Assembly: GCA_964199315.1 (NCBI GenBank)
Contig: OZ116708.1
Span: forward strand, 27,280,001-27,344,000
DNA: 64,000 nt
Reading direction: 5' to 3'
DNA from: Orbicella franksi
Lineage: Eukaryota
In this document: positions 26,866-35,238 of the stretch, in pieces
Layout: each line of letters starts with the position of its first letter
Numbering within the stretch: the first letter of the stretch is position 1
Made by a program: the position numbers and the translations under genes
The notes under the pieces: generated by a model
Databases searched by the model: none
What the model saw: only the letters and a program-made list of their open reading frames with translations
What the model was told of the DNA's origin: nothing

Positions 26866-28066
26866 TTGTGCGATCGCCGCTCTACCAACTTGTAGTCCCT
26901 AACTCTGTGAATCCACAGCCAGCATATTGAGTGTAAATATGTAGAAATTTAGGTATTCATTTATGGGTGATCTGTCACTCGCCAAGCGCTGGCAGTTTAC
27001 GAGGCACTTGAGATAACAAAAGCTTCAACACACGCCGTTGATTGGTGAGCGAGATAATCATTAATCACGTATGGCGAATGCAAATTTTACTGCGTAATTG
27101 AAATTAAAATTTAAATGTAGTCACGCTTTTGTTCAGCTCCGTTTCATGTTGTTCACACCTAGGCAGAATGCGTTCAGACTTTTACTTTGCTTTCGTACTT
27201 TTTACTTAAATAAGGAAGATTAATTACAATAATAAAACCGTGTATTCTACAAGCCCAAAACCTGTGGTATTGCTGAATTCTTTTACTCAGTTTCACATTC
27301 CATTACCAAAACTTAACTGAAATTCAATTAGTGAATTTACTTGCGAAATATTGCTATTTTAATCGAATCCCCAAGGTCCTCGTTTCTGAAAAGACACCAT
27401 CAAACAATATTCTGTTATTAATCGTTTTATCAATTCTCATCACTGTGCAATTAAATGCCAAATGACAATGCATATCATTTTCGTTCCCAGGTGTTTTCTC
27501 TTAGAAACTAAGGGAAAGCCGTGGGAACGAGTTTAATGCGCATCGCGCATCAGTAGTCGATGTCATAATAAAAAATTGACCCTAGTTGGCGTAGATATAT
27601 GGGTGGAACATTTCATAGAAAGAAATAAAACAGTTTTGATCGCAAAGATGCATCTCCTAATTTCTTGATTTATCCATTCAAGGTGGTCAAACGAGCTCTT
27701 TTCACGTGCGCGCACCATGCGTCACCTGTCAGGTCCCATCGCATTCCTCCCCAAGCGCGGGCTCATTTCCCAAAACAGCGGCTGGTAATCGAGCCTATTC
27801 CCTCCCGGCTTCCTTGAGCGTTTCTGATTATCTCTAGTTCCGGAGCGTTGCGAAGATAAGAGTCAACAGTGGACTAAATAAGCATACTTTATAAACGCGC
27901 TAGGCTATAATAAAAAACGCTGAATGAGTTCTGCTATTTTTCTGCTCGTTTGTTGCACTCTAGGTTCGCTGTGAGTTCTCTTCTTTTTCTGTTTTTTTTT
28001 TTTTTTATTTATTTTTTTTTCTCTCGTTTTTGTTTTTATTTTGTTTTTCTGCGAGCTGATATTTAT

Positions 28067-28160
28067 TAGCCTGCGTCGCAGACGGTCTAAACCGCCGGTC
28101 CGGCTGCAATGCACGACTTTATCGGGGATTTTATCACACGTCCGGCTGCAACGCAGCCTG
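28067..28160. mobile_element. hAT-like MITE, short internally deleted copy (left border of the array)
   Basis: Begins TAGCCTGCGTCGCAGACGGTCTAAACCGCC and ends CCGGCTGCAACGCAGCCTG; preceded by ATATTTAT (28059-28066). Confidence 0.75.
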
Positions 28161-28233
28161 TCTGCAGCCAAGTGGTTACATTTCCGAGCTTCGGTTCGGA
28201 AGGGCCGGCGTTCAGCGCCCGAAGGGGAACTCC
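28161..28233 (+). pseudogene. 5'-truncated, mutated copy of the small RNA gene (copy 1)
   Basis: Starts at TCTGCAGCCAAGTGG directly after a MITE end. It lacks GGAGTCCC, and the B box is mutated (GTTCAGCG). Confidence 0.6.
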
Positions 28234-28826
28234 AATTTTTGTTTTCGTATTTGTGTATTACCGAAGAGTTTTCTTTTTCATACAATTCTTTTTCCCCTTT
28301 GAAGTAAGTTAGCTGGTTAAAAACTTTTTTTAAAAAATGACATCCTGATCCTGGCTGATCGTAAAATACCCATCTAGCCATGCCTTTATTTCCTTTAAGC
28401 CCTCTTTCTTAGCTTCTAACCAATAGATGAACTCCTTGAAAAGTACGCCTCACATTTGGAACTGAATTTTTTTTCGGTTTGGAAAAGATGTAATAATGGT
28501 CTTCAAAATACTCTATATAACTGAGGCAAAGCTATTTAAAAAGCTTAAGGGTTTAGTTTGAATGCTTTTGAGCTCAGCCCAGAAATAAACCTTATAAGCT
28601 ATTGAAGCTTTCCTTTGGCAACTTATGGCCTGGATTGTTAAATAAAGGCGAACTACTATTGTTAGAAGAAAGACAATCGTTAAAGAGGCTACAAATTACA
28701 TAGAGATTAGTCTCCATTGGTTCTGTCATTTCTTTTACGGCTTATTTTTTTAAGGATGGATTAGCCTGTCAATAGAACTACTTGTTGTTCGTATAGGTAC
28801 CGTTAAATTTTCTAACTACGTCATAT

Positions 28827-28907
28827 GGAGTCCCTCTGTAGCCCAGTGGTTACATTTCCGAGCTTCGGTTCGGAAGGGCCGGCGTTCAACGCCCACAGAG
28901 GGACTCC
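28827..28907 (+). ncRNA. Candidate vault RNA-like Pol III RNA gene, copy 2 (first intact copy)
   Basis: 81 nt. A box TAGCCCAGTGG, B box GTTCAACGC, perfect 12-bp terminal stem GGAGTCCCTCTG/CAGAGGGACTCC, internal hairpin TTCCGAGC-TTCG-GTTCGGAA, followed by AATTTTT. Confidence 0.65.
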
Positions 28908-29503
28908 AATTTTTATTTTGGTATTTGTGTATTACTGAAGAGTTTTCTTTTTTATACAATTTCCTTTTATTCCGTTTAAACTAAGTTAGCCGGTTAAAAA
29001 CTATCAGTTTAAGAAAATGACATCCTAAACCTGGCTGATCGCAAAATACCCATCTAGCCATTCCTTTATTTGCTTTAAGCTTACTTTCTTAGCTTCTAAC
29101 CAGTAGGTGAAGACCTTGAAAAGTACGCATCACATTTGCAACTGAAATTTTTTTCGGTTTGGAAAAGATGTAATAATGGACTTCAAAATACATTATAACT
29201 GAGGCAAAGCTATTTAAAAGCTGAAGGGTTTACTTTGAATGCTTTTGAGCTCAGCCCAGAAATAAACCTCATAACCTATTGAAGCGTTCCTCTGGGAACT
29301 TATGGCCTGGATTGTTAAATAAAGGCGAACTACTATTGTTACAAGAAAGACAATCGTTACAGACGCTACAAATTACATAGAGGTTAGTCTCCATTGGTTC
29401 TGACCTTTCTTTTATGGCTAATTTTTTTAAGGATGGAGTGGGCTGTCAATAGAACTACTTGTTGTTCGTATAGGTACCGTTAAATTTTCTAACTACGTCA
29501 TAT

Positions 29504-29584
29504 GGAGTCCCTCTGTAGCCCAGTGGTTACATTTCCGAGCTTCGGTTCGGAAGGGCCGGCGTTCAACGCCCACAGGGGGACTCC
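29504..29584 (+). ncRNA. Candidate vault RNA-like Pol III RNA gene, copy 3
   Basis: Same 81-nt sequence (3' stem CAGGGGGACTCC, one G:U pair), followed by AACTTTT. Confidence 0.65.
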
Positions 29585-30173
29585 AACTTTTATTTTGGTA
29601 TTTGTGTATTACTGAAGAGTTTCTTTTTCATACAATTCTTTTTCCCCTTTGAAGTAAATTAGCCGGTTAAAAAGATTTTTTTAAAAAATGACGTCCTGAA
29701 CTTGGTCGATCGTAAAATACCCATCTAGCCATGCCTTTATTTGCTTTAAGCCCTCTTTCTTAGCTTCTAACCAATAGATGAAGACCTTGAAAAGTACACA
29801 TCACATTTGGAACTGAAATTTTTTTTGGTTTCGAAAGAATGGACTTCAAAATACTCTATAACTGAGGCAAAGCTATTTAAAAAGCTTAAGGGTTTAGTTT
29901 GAATGCTTTTGAACTCAGCCCAGAAATAAACCTTATAAGCTATTGAAACTTTCCTTTGGGAACTTATGGCCTGGATTGTTAAATAAAGGCGAACTACTTT
30001 TGTTAGAAGAAAGGCAATCGTTAGAAAGGCTACAAATTCCATAGAGATTAGTCTCCATTAGTTCTGTCATTTCTTTTGTGGCTTAATTTTTTTAAGGACG
30101 GATGGAGTAGGCTGTCAATAGAACTGCATTGTCGTGCGTATAGGTACCGTTAAATTTTCTTATTACGTCATAT

Positions 30174-30254
30174 GGAGTCCCTCTGTAGCCCAGTGGTTAC
30201 ATTTCCGAGCTTCGGTTCGGAAGGGCCGGCGTTCAACGCCCACAGGGGGACTCC
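30174..30254 (+). ncRNA. Candidate vault RNA-like Pol III RNA gene, copy 4
   Basis: Identical to copy 3, followed by AGTTTTT. Confidence 0.65.
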
Positions 30255-30845
30255 AGTTTTTGTTTTGGTATTTGTGTATTACTGAAGAGTTTTCTTTTTC
30301 ATACAATTCTTTTTCCTCTTTGAAGTAAGTTAGCCGGTTAAAAACTTTTTTAAAAAAATGACATCCTGAACCTGGCTGATCGTAAAATACCCATCTAGCC
30401 ATGCCTTTATTTGCTTTAAGCCCTCTTTCTTAGTTTCTAACCAATAGATGAAGACCTTGAAAAGTACGCATCACATTTGGAACTGAAAATTTTTTCGGTT
30501 TGGAAAAGATGTAATAATGGTCTTCAAAATACTCTATAACTGAGGCAAAGCTATTTAAAAAGCTTAAGGGTTTAGTTTGAATGCTTTTGAGCTCAGCCCA
30601 GAAATAAACCTTATAACCTATTGAAGCGTTCCTTTGGCAAATTATGGCTTGGATTGTTAAATAAAGGCGAACTACTTTTGTTAGAAGAAAGGCAATCGTT
30701 AGAGAGGCTACAAATTCCATAGAGATTAGTCTCCATTAGTTCTGTCATTTCTCTTATAGCTTATTTTTTAAGCATGGAGTAGGCTGTTAATAGAACTGCA
30801 TTGCTGTTCGTATAGGTACCGTTAGATTTTCTAACCACGTCATAT

Positions 30846-30926
30846 GGAGTCCCTCTGTAGCCCAGTGGTTGCATTTCCGAGCTTCGGTTCGGAAGGGCCG
30901 GCGTTCAACGCCCGAAGGGGGACTCC
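30846..30926 (+). ncRNA. Candidate vault RNA-like Pol III RNA gene, copy 5 (variant)
   Basis: A and B boxes intact; variants GGTTGC and CCCGAAGGGGG; followed by AATTTT. Confidence 0.55.
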
Positions 30927-31506
30927 AATTTTCGTTTTGGTATTTGTGTATTACTGAAAAGTTTTCTTTTTGATACAATTTTCTTTTTTTCCGTTTGAAG
31001 TAAGTTAGCCGGTTAAAAACTATTTTAAAAAATGACATCCTGAACCTGGCTGATCGTAAAATACCCATCTAGCCATGCCTTTATTTCCTTTAAGCCCTCT
31101 TTCTTAGCTTCTAACCAATAGGTGAAGACCTTGAAAAGTACGCATCACATTTGGAACTGAAATTTTTTTGGTTTCGAAAGAATGGACTTCAAAATGCTCT
31201 GTAACTGAGGCAAAGCTATTTAAAAAGCTTAAGGGTTTAGTTTGAATGCTTTTGAGCGCAGCCCAGAAATAAACCTTATAAGCTATTGAAGCTTTCCTCG
31301 GGCAACTTATGGCCTGGATTGTTAAATAAAGGCGAACTACTATTGTTAGAAGAAAGACAATCGTTAGAGAGGCTACAAATTACATATAGGTTAGTCTCCA
31401 TTAGTTCTGTCATTTTATAGCTTATTTTTTAAGGATGGAGTAGGCAGTCAATAGAGGTACATTGTTGTGCGTATAGGTACTGATAAATTTTCTAAACACG
31501 TCATAT

Positions 31507-31587
31507 GGAGTCCCTCTGTAGCCCAGTGGTTACATTTCCGAGCTTCGGTTCGGAAGGGCCGGCGTTCAACGCCCACAGGGGGACTCC
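31507..31587 (+). ncRNA. Candidate vault RNA-like Pol III RNA gene, copy 6
   Basis: Identical to copy 3, followed by AACTTTT. Confidence 0.65.
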
Positions 31588-32169
31588 AACTTTTATTTTG
31601 GTATTTGTGTATTACTGAAGAGTTTCTTTTTCATACAATTCTTTTTCCCCTTTGAAGTAAATTAGCCGGTTAAAAAGATTTTTTTAAAAAATGACGTCCT
31701 GAACTTGGCTGATCGTAAAATACTCATCTAGCCATGCCTTTATTTGCTTTAAGCCCTCTTTCTTAGCTTTTAACCAATAGATGAAGACCTTGAAAAGTAC
31801 ACATCACATTTGGAACTGAAATTTTTTTGGTTTCGAAAGAATGGACTTCAAAATACTCTATAACTGAGGCAAAGATATTTAAAAAGCTTAAGGGTTTAGT
31901 TTAATGCTTTTGAGCTCAGCCCAGAAATAAACCTTATAAGCTATTGAAACTTTCCTTTGGGAACTTATGGCCTGGATTGTTAAATAAAGGCGAACTACTA
32001 TTGTAAGAAGAAAGACAATCGTTAGAAAGGCTACAAATTCCATAGAGATTAGTCTCCATTAGTTCTGTCATTTCTTTTATGACTTATTTTTTTAAGCATG
32101 GAGTAGGCTGTCAATAGAACTGCATTGTCGTGCGTATAGGTACCGTTAAATTTTCTTATCACGTCATAT

Positions 32170-32250
32170 GGAGTCCCTCTGTAGCCCAGTGGTTACATTT
32201 CCGAGCTTCGGTTCGGAAGGGCCGGCGTTCAACGCCCACAGGGGGACTCC
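32170..32250 (+). ncRNA. Candidate vault RNA-like Pol III RNA gene, copy 7
   Basis: Identical to copy 3, followed by AGTTTTT. Confidence 0.65.
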
Positions 32251-32839
32251 AGTTTTTGTTTTGGTATTTGTGTATTACTGAAGAGTTTTCTTTTTCATAC
32301 AATTCTTTTTCCCCTTTGAAGTAAGTTAGCCGGTTAAAAACTTTTTTAAAAAAATGACATCCTGAACCTGGCTGATCGTAAAATACCCATCTAGCCATGC
32401 CTTTATTTGCTTTAAGCCCTCTTTCTTAGCTTCTAACCAATAGGGGAAGACCTTGAAAAGTACGCATCACATTTGGAACTCAGTGAAATTTTTTTTGGTT
32501 TCGAAAGAATGAACTTCAAAATACTCTATAACTGAGGCAAAGCTATTTAAAAAGCTTGAGGGTATAGTTTGAATGCTTTTGAGCTCAGCCCAGAAATAAA
32601 CCTTATAAGCTATTTAAACTTTCCTTTGGCAACTTGTGGCATGGATTGTTAAATAAAGACGAACTACTTTTGTTAGAAGAAAGACAATCGTTAGAGGGCC
32701 TACAATTATTACATAGAGATTAGTCTCCATTGTATATGTCATTTCTTTTATAGCTTATTTTTTAAGGATGGAGTAGGCAGTCAATAGAACTGCATTGTCG
32801 TGCGTATAGGTACCGTTAAATTTTCTTATTACGTCATAT

Positions 32840-32920
32840 GGAGTCCCTCTGTAGCCCAGTGGTTACATTTCCGAGCTTCGGTTCGGAAGGGCCGGCGTTC
32901 AACGCCCACAGGGGGACTCC
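32840..32920 (+). ncRNA. Candidate vault RNA-like Pol III RNA gene, copy 8
   Basis: Identical to copy 3, followed by AATTTTT. Confidence 0.65.
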
Positions 32921-33325
32921 AATTTTTATTTTGGTATTTGTGTATTACTGAAGTGTTTTCTTTTTCGTAAAATTTTCTTGTTTTCCGTGTAAAGTAAGTT
33001 AGCCGGTTAAAAAGTTTTTTTGAAAAATGACATCCTGAACCTGGCTGATTGTAAAATGCCCATTTAACCATGCCTTTATTTGCTTTAAGCCCTCTTTCTT
33101 AGCTTCTAACCAATAGGTGAAGGCCTTGAAAAGTACGCATCACATTTGAAACTGAAATTTTTTTCGGTTTGGAAAAGATGTAATAATGGACTTCCAAATA
33201 CCCTATAACTGAGGCAAAGCCATTTAAAACGCTTAAGGGTTTAGGCTGTCAATACAACTACATTGCATGTGCATATAGGTAGCGTTAAATTTTCTAACCA
33301 CGTCATATTGAGTCCCTCTTTTGCC

Positions 33326-33506
33326 TAGCTTGCGTCGCAGACAGTCTAAACCGCCAGTATAAGAAGACGCGTAAGAAACTAGCCAATCAGAAATGGATAC
33401 AGAAATTCGTGTATCTATGCGGGAAATCAGAACAAGCTTTTGGGAGCCGTTTAGCAGACGGACTATATCGGAGATTTTATGATCCGTCCGGCTGCAATGC
33501 AGGCTA
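33326..33506. mobile_element. hAT-like MITE, same family (right border of the array)
   Basis: Begins TAGCTTGCGTCGCAGACAGTCTAAACCGCC and ends CCGGCTGCAATGCAGGCTA; followed by ATATTTAT (33507-33514). Confidence 0.8.
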
Positions 33507-35238
33507 ATATTTATTCGAGCTCGTAAAAGCGAACGCCCGTGGGGAAACGCAAAGGAAATAGAGGGGTTGACAAGCTAACAAAGGTGACGGTATGCAAAGG
33601 TTCTCTTTAAATGTGTGCATATAGTTTAAATCTGAGAACAAAGCAATCAATGTCTGAAACGACGTGCTTCAAGTTTGTTTGAAGACTTGATCAGTTCAAT
33701 TTTTTCGCATACGGAAACCTGATTCTTGTTTCAAATCTTCTCGTCACTCAATCGAACAGATACGCGACCTTCAGCGTGCTACGACTGCTCGGATTTTTGG
33801 AAATGTTGCAGGGAATGTTAAAGCAGGGTTTTGCACAGTCGACTGACCAGGGACGGGAGGCTCTATATGGTAGCCCCTTCCGCCCCCTCCCCAACCCCCC
33901 CTCCCTCTAAATGCGCGCGCAGGTCAAAAGTAGTCCGAGGTAAACCTTCGGTGGCACCTTGCTTGTCAGGTCCAATGTGGGTTCAAGGGACTGTATAGAT
34001 CGTGCAAACAAGAAGAAAAATATATGAACGTCAACAATAGATTATGATCCAGATCATATTCTCTTGACGCCAAACGCTTTTCATTGAAGACAGCAACTTT
34101 TCTTTATTTTTTACGTGAATATTTTTTCTCAAATTGAACACGACCAAGAGATATTTTCTAACCTGAGAAAGAAGCTCATTTGATGAAGCATTTCTGAAAA
34201 GAGCATTTCCATAAAAGTAAAACTCTAGCATCTATTTTTTCCGTTTATTTCCCTGTTTGTAGAAGGAAGTTATAATTCAAATGGTTTATTCTGTCTTTGC
34301 ATGGTTTTCATACATACGCCGAAAGAGAGTGAAAAAATGTGGCTAGCCCGTAACCCCACAGAACAAAGCACTTCATTGGTTTATTAAACAAGCCGGATCA
34401 CACTATTCCCAAACGCACAAACAACAATTAAGATTCCAGAGAGGCGGTGGTACAATGAGTAAAATGGCGGGAAAAAGCTTGCAGTGACTAAAATTCGTGA
34501 CGTACTTGTTCACCATTGGTCCAATCTTATTTTCCATATTCATGATGAGTCTTGCTGATGTGAGGTGTTTGTTTGTCATTCAGAGAAGTTCGCGGACTGG
34601 TAGGATGTGTATCGTTCCCTTCTTCACGAGAAGAAACTTCAAAGACGATTTACTGAAGGCGTTTGGAGAAGAAGTAGTTTCACATTGTGTAAATCTATGG
34701 TAGGTTGCTATTTCCTGGCATTTTAGTTCAAATTGGTGCGAAGTATTCCGACAAATGCTACTCCAAATCTGACCACGTACGCTTGTTAACTCGGTTTACG
34801 TTTCGCGTCGAAGCTCACAATGCCTCATGTCTAAGCCACGACTAAAACTTGTAATGAAATAACACTTGAATCATTCGAGACGGTTTGTTGAACTTATTTT
34901 GTTTTCTTGAGAATTTTTCGTTCGTCCCGCAAGTTGCTCCAAGATGATAAATGATTCCGTTGAGAAACAGGGGGAAAATATTACACTGATTTGTTCTAAT
35001 TTATAGTTATTGTTGATCACCGTTGACACGTTTGGATTTGCTCCTTCCACTTTCAGAAAGAAAAGTCCTGAAGAGAGCAAAGTCGGTGGACAACAAGGAA
35101 CAAGTCAACTTTACATTAACTAGAGGAGGACACAAAGATAAGAACATTATTTGTAAATTTAGTTCAGTTTACAGTGAAACCTTTCCAATAGAAATGGCAG
35201 CGTTTTTACATGACAATTTTTGGAGTTAATTTCAAAAC

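Follow-up and report, generated by a model that had tools for sequence, protein, structure and literature searches.

The closest described systems come from maize, bacteria, Drosophila and another reef coral. In maize, the Ac macrotransposons (Huang and Dooner 2008; Wang et al. 2022, as cited in PMC9910405) enclose several kb of host DNA between two copies of one cut-and-paste family that point the same way; the family's 8-bp duplication flanks the whole unit, and such units excise and reinsert. Bacterial cointegrates and IS-bounded composite transposons (Shapiro-type replicon fusion) carry their element copies in direct repeat, with the topology flank-element-target repeat-circle content-target repeat-element-flank. 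The Rsp-like satellite of Drosophila spread via circle reintegration, with truncated first and last units that make one complete unit (PMC7403614). The CMITEs of Acropora are short, non-coding, inverted-repeat elements, piggyBac-like with TTAA targets and CCYT termini; they form arrays of themselves, and some are linked with tandem arrays (PMC2872659).

The locus reported here lies in a 64,000-nucleotide stretch of Orbicella franksi DNA (the window) and shares features with each of these systems. In contrast to the Ac macrotransposons, the coral case is natural, old and fixed, its elements are tiny non-coding derivatives, the tandem array it carries is circularly permuted by way of a further, inner duplication, and neither excision nor a donor site was seen. 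Its topology is that of the bacterial structures, whereas its family is of the eukaryotic cut-and-paste kind, and the second element copy would derive from a sister chromatid, from a duplication at an earlier time or from a separate insertion; to our knowledge, replicative transposition is not known in this family. Unlike the Rsp-like arrays, which are satellite DNA, the coral units are intact RNA genes, and the array ends overlap by a duplication of transposon length, each end abutting a transposon copy. The Orbicella family is also distinct from CMITEs in its 8-bp duplications and TAG...CTA termini and in bounding an array of host genes. We concluded that the block from 28067 to 33506 entered a unique site on chromosome piece C11 in one event, by or through two 8-bp-duplicating, hAT-like non-autonomous elements (probability about 0.8). 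In general terms this upholds the sequence-only reading, which had proposed a MITE-mediated relocation of the array. Table 1 gives the features; all those named in that reading were found in place by direct reading.

Table 1. Features of the relocated array and its borders (positions in the window).
Feature	Position	Strand	Remark
Outer direct repeat copy 1, ATATTTAT	28059..28066	+	abuts 5' terminus of left element; read directly
Left element, 94 bp	28067..28160	+	family positions 1-33, unique 15-nt centre, last 46 nt
Inner repeat copy 1, TCTGCAGCC	28161..28169	+	homology to intact genes starts at 28161/28162
Split RNA gene, 3' part with T-run	28161..28241	+	6/73 positions differ from intact gene
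Tandem array, units of ~660-670 bp	28161..33325	+	between the two elements, ~5.2 kb
Seven intact RNA genes of ~82 nt	starts 28827, 29504, 30174, 30846, 31507, 32170, 32840	+	
Split RNA gene, 5' part	33309..33325	+	3/17 positions changed
GAGTCCC + TCTTTTGCC, end of split gene 5' part	33310-33325	+	read directly
Inner repeat copy 2, TCTTTTGCC	33317..33325	+	directly before right element
Right element, 181 bp	33326..33506	+	family positions 1-36, last 143 nt; termini TAG...CTA
Outer direct repeat copy 2, ATATTTAT	33507..33514	+	abuts 3' terminus of right element; contigs 33374-33760 in four runs

The locus has the macrotransposon layout: two elements of one family in direct orientation, as the sequence-only reading had stated, stand around a cargo, and an 8-bp duplication of the family type lies outside the outer termini. 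The array starts and ends within one RNA gene, and when its circularly permuted ends are joined they give one gene with an overlap of 8-9 nt, which reads TCTGTAGCC in the intact genes. The inner duplication of about 9 nt proposed earlier held in its length (9 nt by homology, not 8), while its copies proved imperfect, having drifted from TCTGTAGCC by one and two changes. The outer repeat is an AT-only word beside a T-rich tract. At its 5' terminus the left element agrees with the consensus, and at its 3' terminus it is degenerate (CCTG vs GCTA in the family); contigs of other copies depart from its sequence exactly at 28067 and past 28156. Its 15-nt centre resembles the 3' terminal motif at 13/15 nt and looks like filler. 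In the right element, contig loose ends at 33364 mark the internal breakpoint, and a second instance of its deletion structure was not seen in the genome. An insertion of the array into a single element was also considered; it would split one element into halves, and here both elements have both ends.

The family has about 117 5' ends in the 497-Mb genome. Clean 8-bp target-site duplications (8/8 flanks) were found at no fewer than 15 independent copies, among them full-length ones (L008, L011, L013, L016, L020, L022, L029) and short ones (L078, L079, L081-L084), in agreement with the 8-bp rule claimed earlier; several more copies have 7/8 matches, and three (L002, L026, L077) have 9-nt flank repeats. 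At least 28 short copies of 76-91 bp with their own duplications exist besides the two elements of the locus; their identity to the left element is 75-84%, and their centres vary. Neither locus element has a matching duplication of its own, and no derived substitution is common to the two, although only 79 nt can be compared, which is uninformative. The label MITE used in the sequence-only reading suits elements that are short and non-coding with terminal inverted repeats and target-site duplications; the high copy number and homogeneous copies of MITEs were not found, and "deletion derivative of a 1.2-kb non-autonomous element" is more exact. In hAT elements the terminal inverted repeats are short and bear a YARNG-type motif at the terminus. 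The family termini, TAGCC...GGCTA, agree with 4/5 positions of that motif; the inverted repeat, ~15 nt long and with mismatches, is nested within a longer subterminal one. We call the family hAT-like solely from its duplication length and TAG...CTA termini. At least 150 matches to the hAT dimerisation domain exceed the cut-off in the genome, many of them in open frames of ~700 aa, and none lies near the listed family termini as a transposase-bearing partner.

The intact RNA genes carry box A/box B-like motifs and T-run terminators, and the last array unit has a ~210-bp spacer deletion. ARAGORN called 0 tRNA genes for the cargo gene. Rfam returned no match at gathering scores in the 64-kb window and, for one array unit, nothing relevant at E up to 10, with tRNA, vault RNA and Y RNA considered. 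Identity is 90-98% within the C11 array and 82-87% to arrays on chromosome piece C2, and the gene subtype of this array is common only to the array at C2:18.20 Mb. The C11 array is an outpost of a large small-RNA gene family centred on C2. The intact genes differ by 1.6%, while the halves of the split gene are ~10% changed. Judged by this divergence, the relocated, putatively Pol III-type array shows constraint after the move, and its spacers and split gene drifted.

Next, we consider whether the nested pattern could be due to chance or assembly. The + strand of the 64 kb holds ATATTTAT 3 times (~5e-5 per position), the terminus motif of the elements is found in the window only at these two copies against 0.01 expected, and for two array ends of independent origin the chance of a 6-10-nt overlap is ~5 in 660. 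The joint chance that both outer termini carry the exact 8-mer and that the array ends overlap in phase by 8-9 nt is ~1e-6 or less, and the nested A-TE-B...B-TE-A pattern reported earlier is real and non-random by these estimates. Junction support comes from short-read contigs of independent sequencing runs in up to four coral taxa. The junction between left element and gene is bridged in 3 runs and the right element/ATATTTAT/flank junction in 4 runs and all four taxa; the left outer junction is partly covered (14 aligned flank letters in 2 runs), and the junction between gene and right element is absent among the contig pieces listed. With three of its four junctions recovered in contigs from as many as four coral taxa (only in part for the left outer junction), the locus is real, not an assembly artefact, and old. 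The insertion is already carried by all four sampled taxa. None of the three runnable tests that had been named beforehand (the array at orthologous loci without elements, junctions made by the assembly, family copies lacking 8-bp duplications) spoke against the relocation.

Both flanks, at 27860-28058 and 33515-33760, are single copy in the genome, and flank searches for an empty or paralogous site gave only T-rich low-complexity matches. The empty allele and the donor array lacking MITE flanks that the sequence-only reading had proposed to look for did not appear, the former among the listed contig joints of four coral taxa and the latter in genome searches in which the best candidates were scored. 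Exact patterns with up to 3 mismatches for other junctions of gene and element gave nothing outside the window, nor did junction-spanning DNA queries (best 40 of 307-478 candidates scored). The absence of donor junctions is weak evidence because only the best candidates were scored. Genome-wide, no duplicated CTGTAG stands ahead of any gene as an excision footprint, and searches of the genome gave neither a second copy of the composite nor an element-only site. The element family was not found within the five C2 arrays examined, and the ends of the array at C2:19.80 Mb show no clear circular permutation.

What we observe directly is the anatomy, the 8-bp rule of the family, and that the locus is old and unique. 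Four routes (macrotransposition, circle recombination, sister-copy transposition and ectopic gap repair) yield an identical pattern, and the present genome cannot tell them apart. The sequence-only reading had the array arrive as an extrachromosomal circle or composite transposon; the composite fits equally well, while the pattern is not specific to recombination between a circle and a chromosomal copy. Our favoured route, held tentatively and at less than even odds, is macrotransposition. In this route an element would have inserted into one gene of a donor array, duplicating CTGTAGCC, and unequal exchange would have copied the interrupted unit, giving two direct-orientation elements a few units apart. 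Transposase may then have paired the outer 5' end of one element with the outer 3' end of the other and moved both elements with the intervening units into a target ATATTTAT, which was duplicated. The later stage is what the locus displays: the intact genes have remained near-identical, and the split halves, spacers and both elements have decayed. One element would also have lost its centre in place.

Macrotransposition is favoured by the nested repeats exactly at the element termini, with their low chance expectation, and by the outlying array, the single-copy flanks, the 8-bp duplications of the family, the junction contigs in up to four taxa and the pattern of decay; the maize Ac macrotransposons (PMC9910405) are a precedent. 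The outer termini match the consensus at their last bases, and the degeneracy of the left element's inner 3' terminus would make the distal end the preferred one. Removal of the donor by cut-and-paste fits both the lack of other gene/element junctions and the element-free C2 arrays, and hAT genes with long open frames may supply the transposase. Against macrotransposition, the two elements are built differently (94 vs 181 bp) with no common derived substitution, so a common origin needs a later deletion in place. Also against it are the missing donor array, excision footprint and second composite copy, and the need for an element in an RNA gene, a small target, followed by duplication of the unit. 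The inner overlap of 9 nt rather than 8 counts against it too, yet 9-nt flank repeats occur at three family copies.

The same pattern would follow from aberrant transposition of a lone resident element at ATATTTAT, a route we consider rather unlikely. Here, once the site had replicated, transposase would pair the 5' end of one sister-chromatid copy with the 3' end of the other and insert them into an extrachromosomal circle of array DNA, which would be opened at CTGTAGCC with duplication, leaving element-array-element between the old ATATTTAT copies as a eukaryotic counterpart of the bacterial cointegrate. This gives the exact observed pattern from only one prior element insertion, makes the inner repeat a duplication of the family length and requires no element in the donor array, in line with the failure to find such junctions elsewhere. 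Against it, copies that were identical at first would need later deletion to reach their differing structures, and we know of no documented case in which a hAT-type element joined a chromosome to a circle via sister ends. Tandem arrays of an abundant family are the circle-forming kind of DNA (PMC7403614), and Ac transposition with the ends of two separate element copies is documented (PMC4270019).

The cointegrate of the sequence-only reading, in which an array circle bearing an element flanked by CTGTAGCC crosses over with an unrelated resident copy flanked by ATATTTAT, is quite improbable in our judgement. It gives the identical pattern and naturally explains the differing structures without common derived changes, and the joining of array ends into a single unit has been proposed to mark circle reintegration (PMC7403614). 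However, the two elements have only 33 + 46 nt in common at ~86% identity, very short for a crossover unless formerly longer; two independent insertions are needed, one of them into a small target, and an element-bearing array was found nowhere else. Lower still we place ectopic gap repair, a doubtful route in which a resident element at ATATTTAT excises and the broken ends copy the element from the sister chromatid, switch to a family copy within an array gene, copy outward on both sides and anneal within the repeats. The final pattern is again identical, from one donor-array element; the filler-like centre of the left element would be a trace of interrupted repair, and the family has yielded many internally deleted derivatives. 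The element that this route requires within a donor gene was not found, and the ectopic template would have to be copied over a long tract of more than 5 kb. A native array without relocation, its elements and repeat pairs being independent insertions, chance matches or misassembly, could draw on the AT-only outer repeat beside a T-rich tract, the imperfect inner copies and junction data from contigs rather than long reads, but is highly improbable given the joint chance of ~1e-6 or less, two elements without matching duplications of their own, only ~117 family 5' ends in 497 Mb, and independent contigs from three to four runs that span two junctions and reach partway across the left outer one.

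Jumps of tandem gene arrays and satellites to new chromosomes have mostly been inferred from weak junction evidence. At this coral locus neither layer of target-site duplication has been lost, which allows the event to be assigned to a named transposon family and narrowed to four explicit mechanisms. The locus is a clean example from nature of non-coding RNA genes being dispersed by transposons in a cnidarian. If insertion of sister ends into a circle were true, it would be a eukaryotic, transposase-made "cointegrate", and such elements could capture circular DNA and seed new gene arrays.

Direct reading of 27700-33900 in the window (C11:27280001-27344000 of the 497-Mb coral genome) recovered, at the stated positions, every feature that the sequence-only reading had described there, a tandem array of RNA genes set between two transposable elements. 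The sequence directly to the left of the left element recurs directly to the right of the right one (outer repeat A), and the inner flanks of the two elements match each other inside a split RNA gene (inner repeat B). Both flanks of the insertion site are single copy in the genome. A T-rich tract of 65 nt lies immediately to the left of the insertion site. We consider that the block was relocated in one transposon-mediated event, with a probability of roughly 0.8.

Features of the array and its flanking elements (window positions)
Feature	Position	Basis
Outer repeat copy 1, ATATTTAT	28059-28066	direct reading
Left element, 94 bp	28067-28160	direct reading
TCTGCAGCC then 3' part of RNA gene	directly after left element	direct reading
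Tandem array, ~660-670-bp units	between 3' and 5' gene parts	direct reading
Intact RNA genes (n=7)	starts 28827, 29504, 30174, 30846, 31507, 32170, 32840	
5' part of same RNA gene, terminating in TCTTTTGCC	33309-33325	direct reading
Right element, 181 bp	33326-33506	direct reading
Outer repeat copy 2, ATATTTAT	33507-33514	direct reading

Both elements derive by internal deletion from one non-autonomous family, which has a 1196-bp consensus, termini TAGCCTGCGTCGCAGAC...GCAACGCAGGCTA, long subterminal inverted repeats and about 117 5' ends in the genome. The right element joins consensus 1-36 to the last 143 nt, a structure for which the genome search found no second instance, and the left element joins consensus 1-33 to the last 46 nt through a unique 15-nt centre resembling the family 3' terminal motif (13/15 nt). 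Taken singly, neither element lies between matching flank repeats (3/8 at the right element). The claim that the family makes 8-bp duplications is borne out by exact flank repeats at independent loci, both in full-length copies (L008, L011, L013, L016, L020, L022, and L029) and in short copies of 76-91 bp (L078, L079, and L081-L084); several further full-length copies show a 7/8 flank match. Flank repeats of 9 nt occur in three family copies (L002, L026, and L077), and therefore the 9-nt inner overlap at the locus is compatible with how the family behaves. Duplications of 8 bp and termini of the form TAG...CTA fit a putative, partly tested assignment to the hAT superfamily. The hAT dimerisation domains in the genome number at least 150, many of them within open frames of ~700 aa; no transposase-bearing copy with the family's termini was found. 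The family has yielded at least 28 short derivatives (76-91 bp); their differing central fillers and the clustering of deletion breakpoints at the centre of the long inverted repeat suggest recurrent hairpin-loop loss, not one amplified MITE. Seven full-length copies on chromosome piece C8 (9.6-11.2 Mb; L005, L006, L007, and L016-L019) have common flanks and carry the duplication GAAGAGTC, exactly or with a single change, and were multiplied by segmental duplication of the locus, not by transposition.

The intact RNA genes are ~82 nt long, with box A-like and box B-like motifs, a T-run at the end and a predicted stable stem structure (-44.5 kcal/mol, z = -5.95). The gene was not called by tRNA calling on the window and had no Rfam family match even at E values up to 10. 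The intact genes differ pairwise by 1.6% and the spacers by 6-18%, and the split gene halves have changed at 9/90 positions, which shows that the split gene has been dead since the arrangement formed and that constraint or homogenisation acts on the intact copies. Much larger arrays of the same unit lie on chromosome piece C2 at 17.94, 18.20, 18.70, 19.08, 19.30-19.35, and 19.80 Mb, and more distant short-unit arrays on C2, C11 (24.1-24.9 Mb), C14, C1, and C15. Identity is 90-98% among window units and 82-87% between these and C2 units; the last window unit, with a deletion of ~210 bp, stands furthest apart (83-85%). The gene subtype of the window, GGAGTCCC...GGGACTCCAATTTTT, is found again solely in a small array at C2:18.20 Mb. 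This divergence, the decay of the split gene and the distribution of arrays indicate that the window array is an old outpost of an RNA-gene family centred elsewhere. Both strands of the terminal stem distinguish the gene subtypes, with GGAGTCCCTCTG...CAGGGGGACTCC in the window and at C2:18.20 Mb and GGATTCCCCCTG...CAGGGGGACCC in the large arrays of C2, a hint of paired changes in the stem; the ~50 nt inside the gene hardly vary across the window and the C2 arrays (L038-L060). Very long arrays of the family occupy C2:19302363-19347306 and C2:18704348-18714329; the part examined at 19.34 Mb has 11 identical 683-bp units, with matches extending at least 45 kb, and such arrays may reflect recent amplification or collapsed assembly. 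A spacer part present in every unit (29781-30011; unit positions ~277-507) matches dispersed copies at C1:38.9-44.5 Mb and C7:9.44 Mb with 76-88% identity, and seems to be a piece of another repeat family.

The pattern A-element-B...B-element-A is not specific to one route; four yield it, and the evidence for choosing among them is weak. We tentatively favour macrotransposition, in which insertion of an element into a donor-array gene would have made B, unequal exchange would have duplicated the interrupted unit, and the complete block would have been carried to a new target A by way of the outer ends of the two element copies. A precedent for part of the routes is given by Ac macrotransposons with 8-bp duplications (PMC9910405), and PMC4270019 provides one for transposition using the ends of two separate elements. 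The outer termini of the elements are consensus-like and the left element has a degenerate inner 3' terminus, which would make the distal end the more likely one to be used. No gene/element junction other than those of the locus was found among the best-scoring candidates of the genome searches, nor the element family in the C2 arrays examined, nor an excision footprint in the genome search. These absences fit macrotransposition better than crossover or gap repair, and the same holds for sister-end transposition, a rather unlikely route in which a resident element (A) would insert its 5' end from one sister chromatid and its 3' end from the other into an element-free array circle, creating B. 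Their weight is reduced, since they concern best-scoring candidates and an old event.

The sequence-only reading had proposed that a circle with an element in a gene (B) recombined with a resident element (A). For arrays in which the two end units together make up a whole one, circle reintegration has been proposed (PMC7403614). At this locus such a homologous crossover is quite unlikely; the present structures would offer it just 33 or 46 nt at about 86% identity. Ectopic gap repair, in which a resident element would excise and repair would switch template into an element in a donor array, is improbable. The absences fit both of these routes more poorly, whereas the structural difference between the two elements, with no derived change in common across 79 comparable nt, fits them better than the other two; the latter evidence weighs little because the family readily loses its centre and only 79 nt are comparable. 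Relocation through the elements is upheld, but the circle-by-crossover reading is no better than its rivals.

Chance or artefact is highly improbable. ATATTTAT occurs three times on the + strand of the window, the element terminus motif solely at the two elements (0.01 expected), and the probability of a 6-10-nt overlap between two independent array ends is about 5/660, so that the chance of the combined pattern is no more than about 1e-6. Short-read contigs from four coral taxa, contig-level data, were aligned to 27860-33760. Contigs bridge the left element/gene junction over 28053-28195 without difference (two runs) and 28067-28216 (a third run), and the right element/ATATTTAT/flank junction over 33374-33760 in 4/4 runs. 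Support at the left outer junction amounts to just 14 aligned flank letters, because the adjoining T-rich tract (27984-28048) was skipped as repeat. The gene/right-element junction was absent among the contig pieces listed, and no empty-site joint (28066 to 33507) was present among the joints listed, with 13 further joints beyond these. The bridged junctions from several taxa show that the arrangement is not an assembly artefact and is common to several corals.

The locus is a natural case of a known kind, the composite or macrotransposon-like capture of host DNA. What is unusual in it is the double duplication signature and the cargo of Pol III-type genes.
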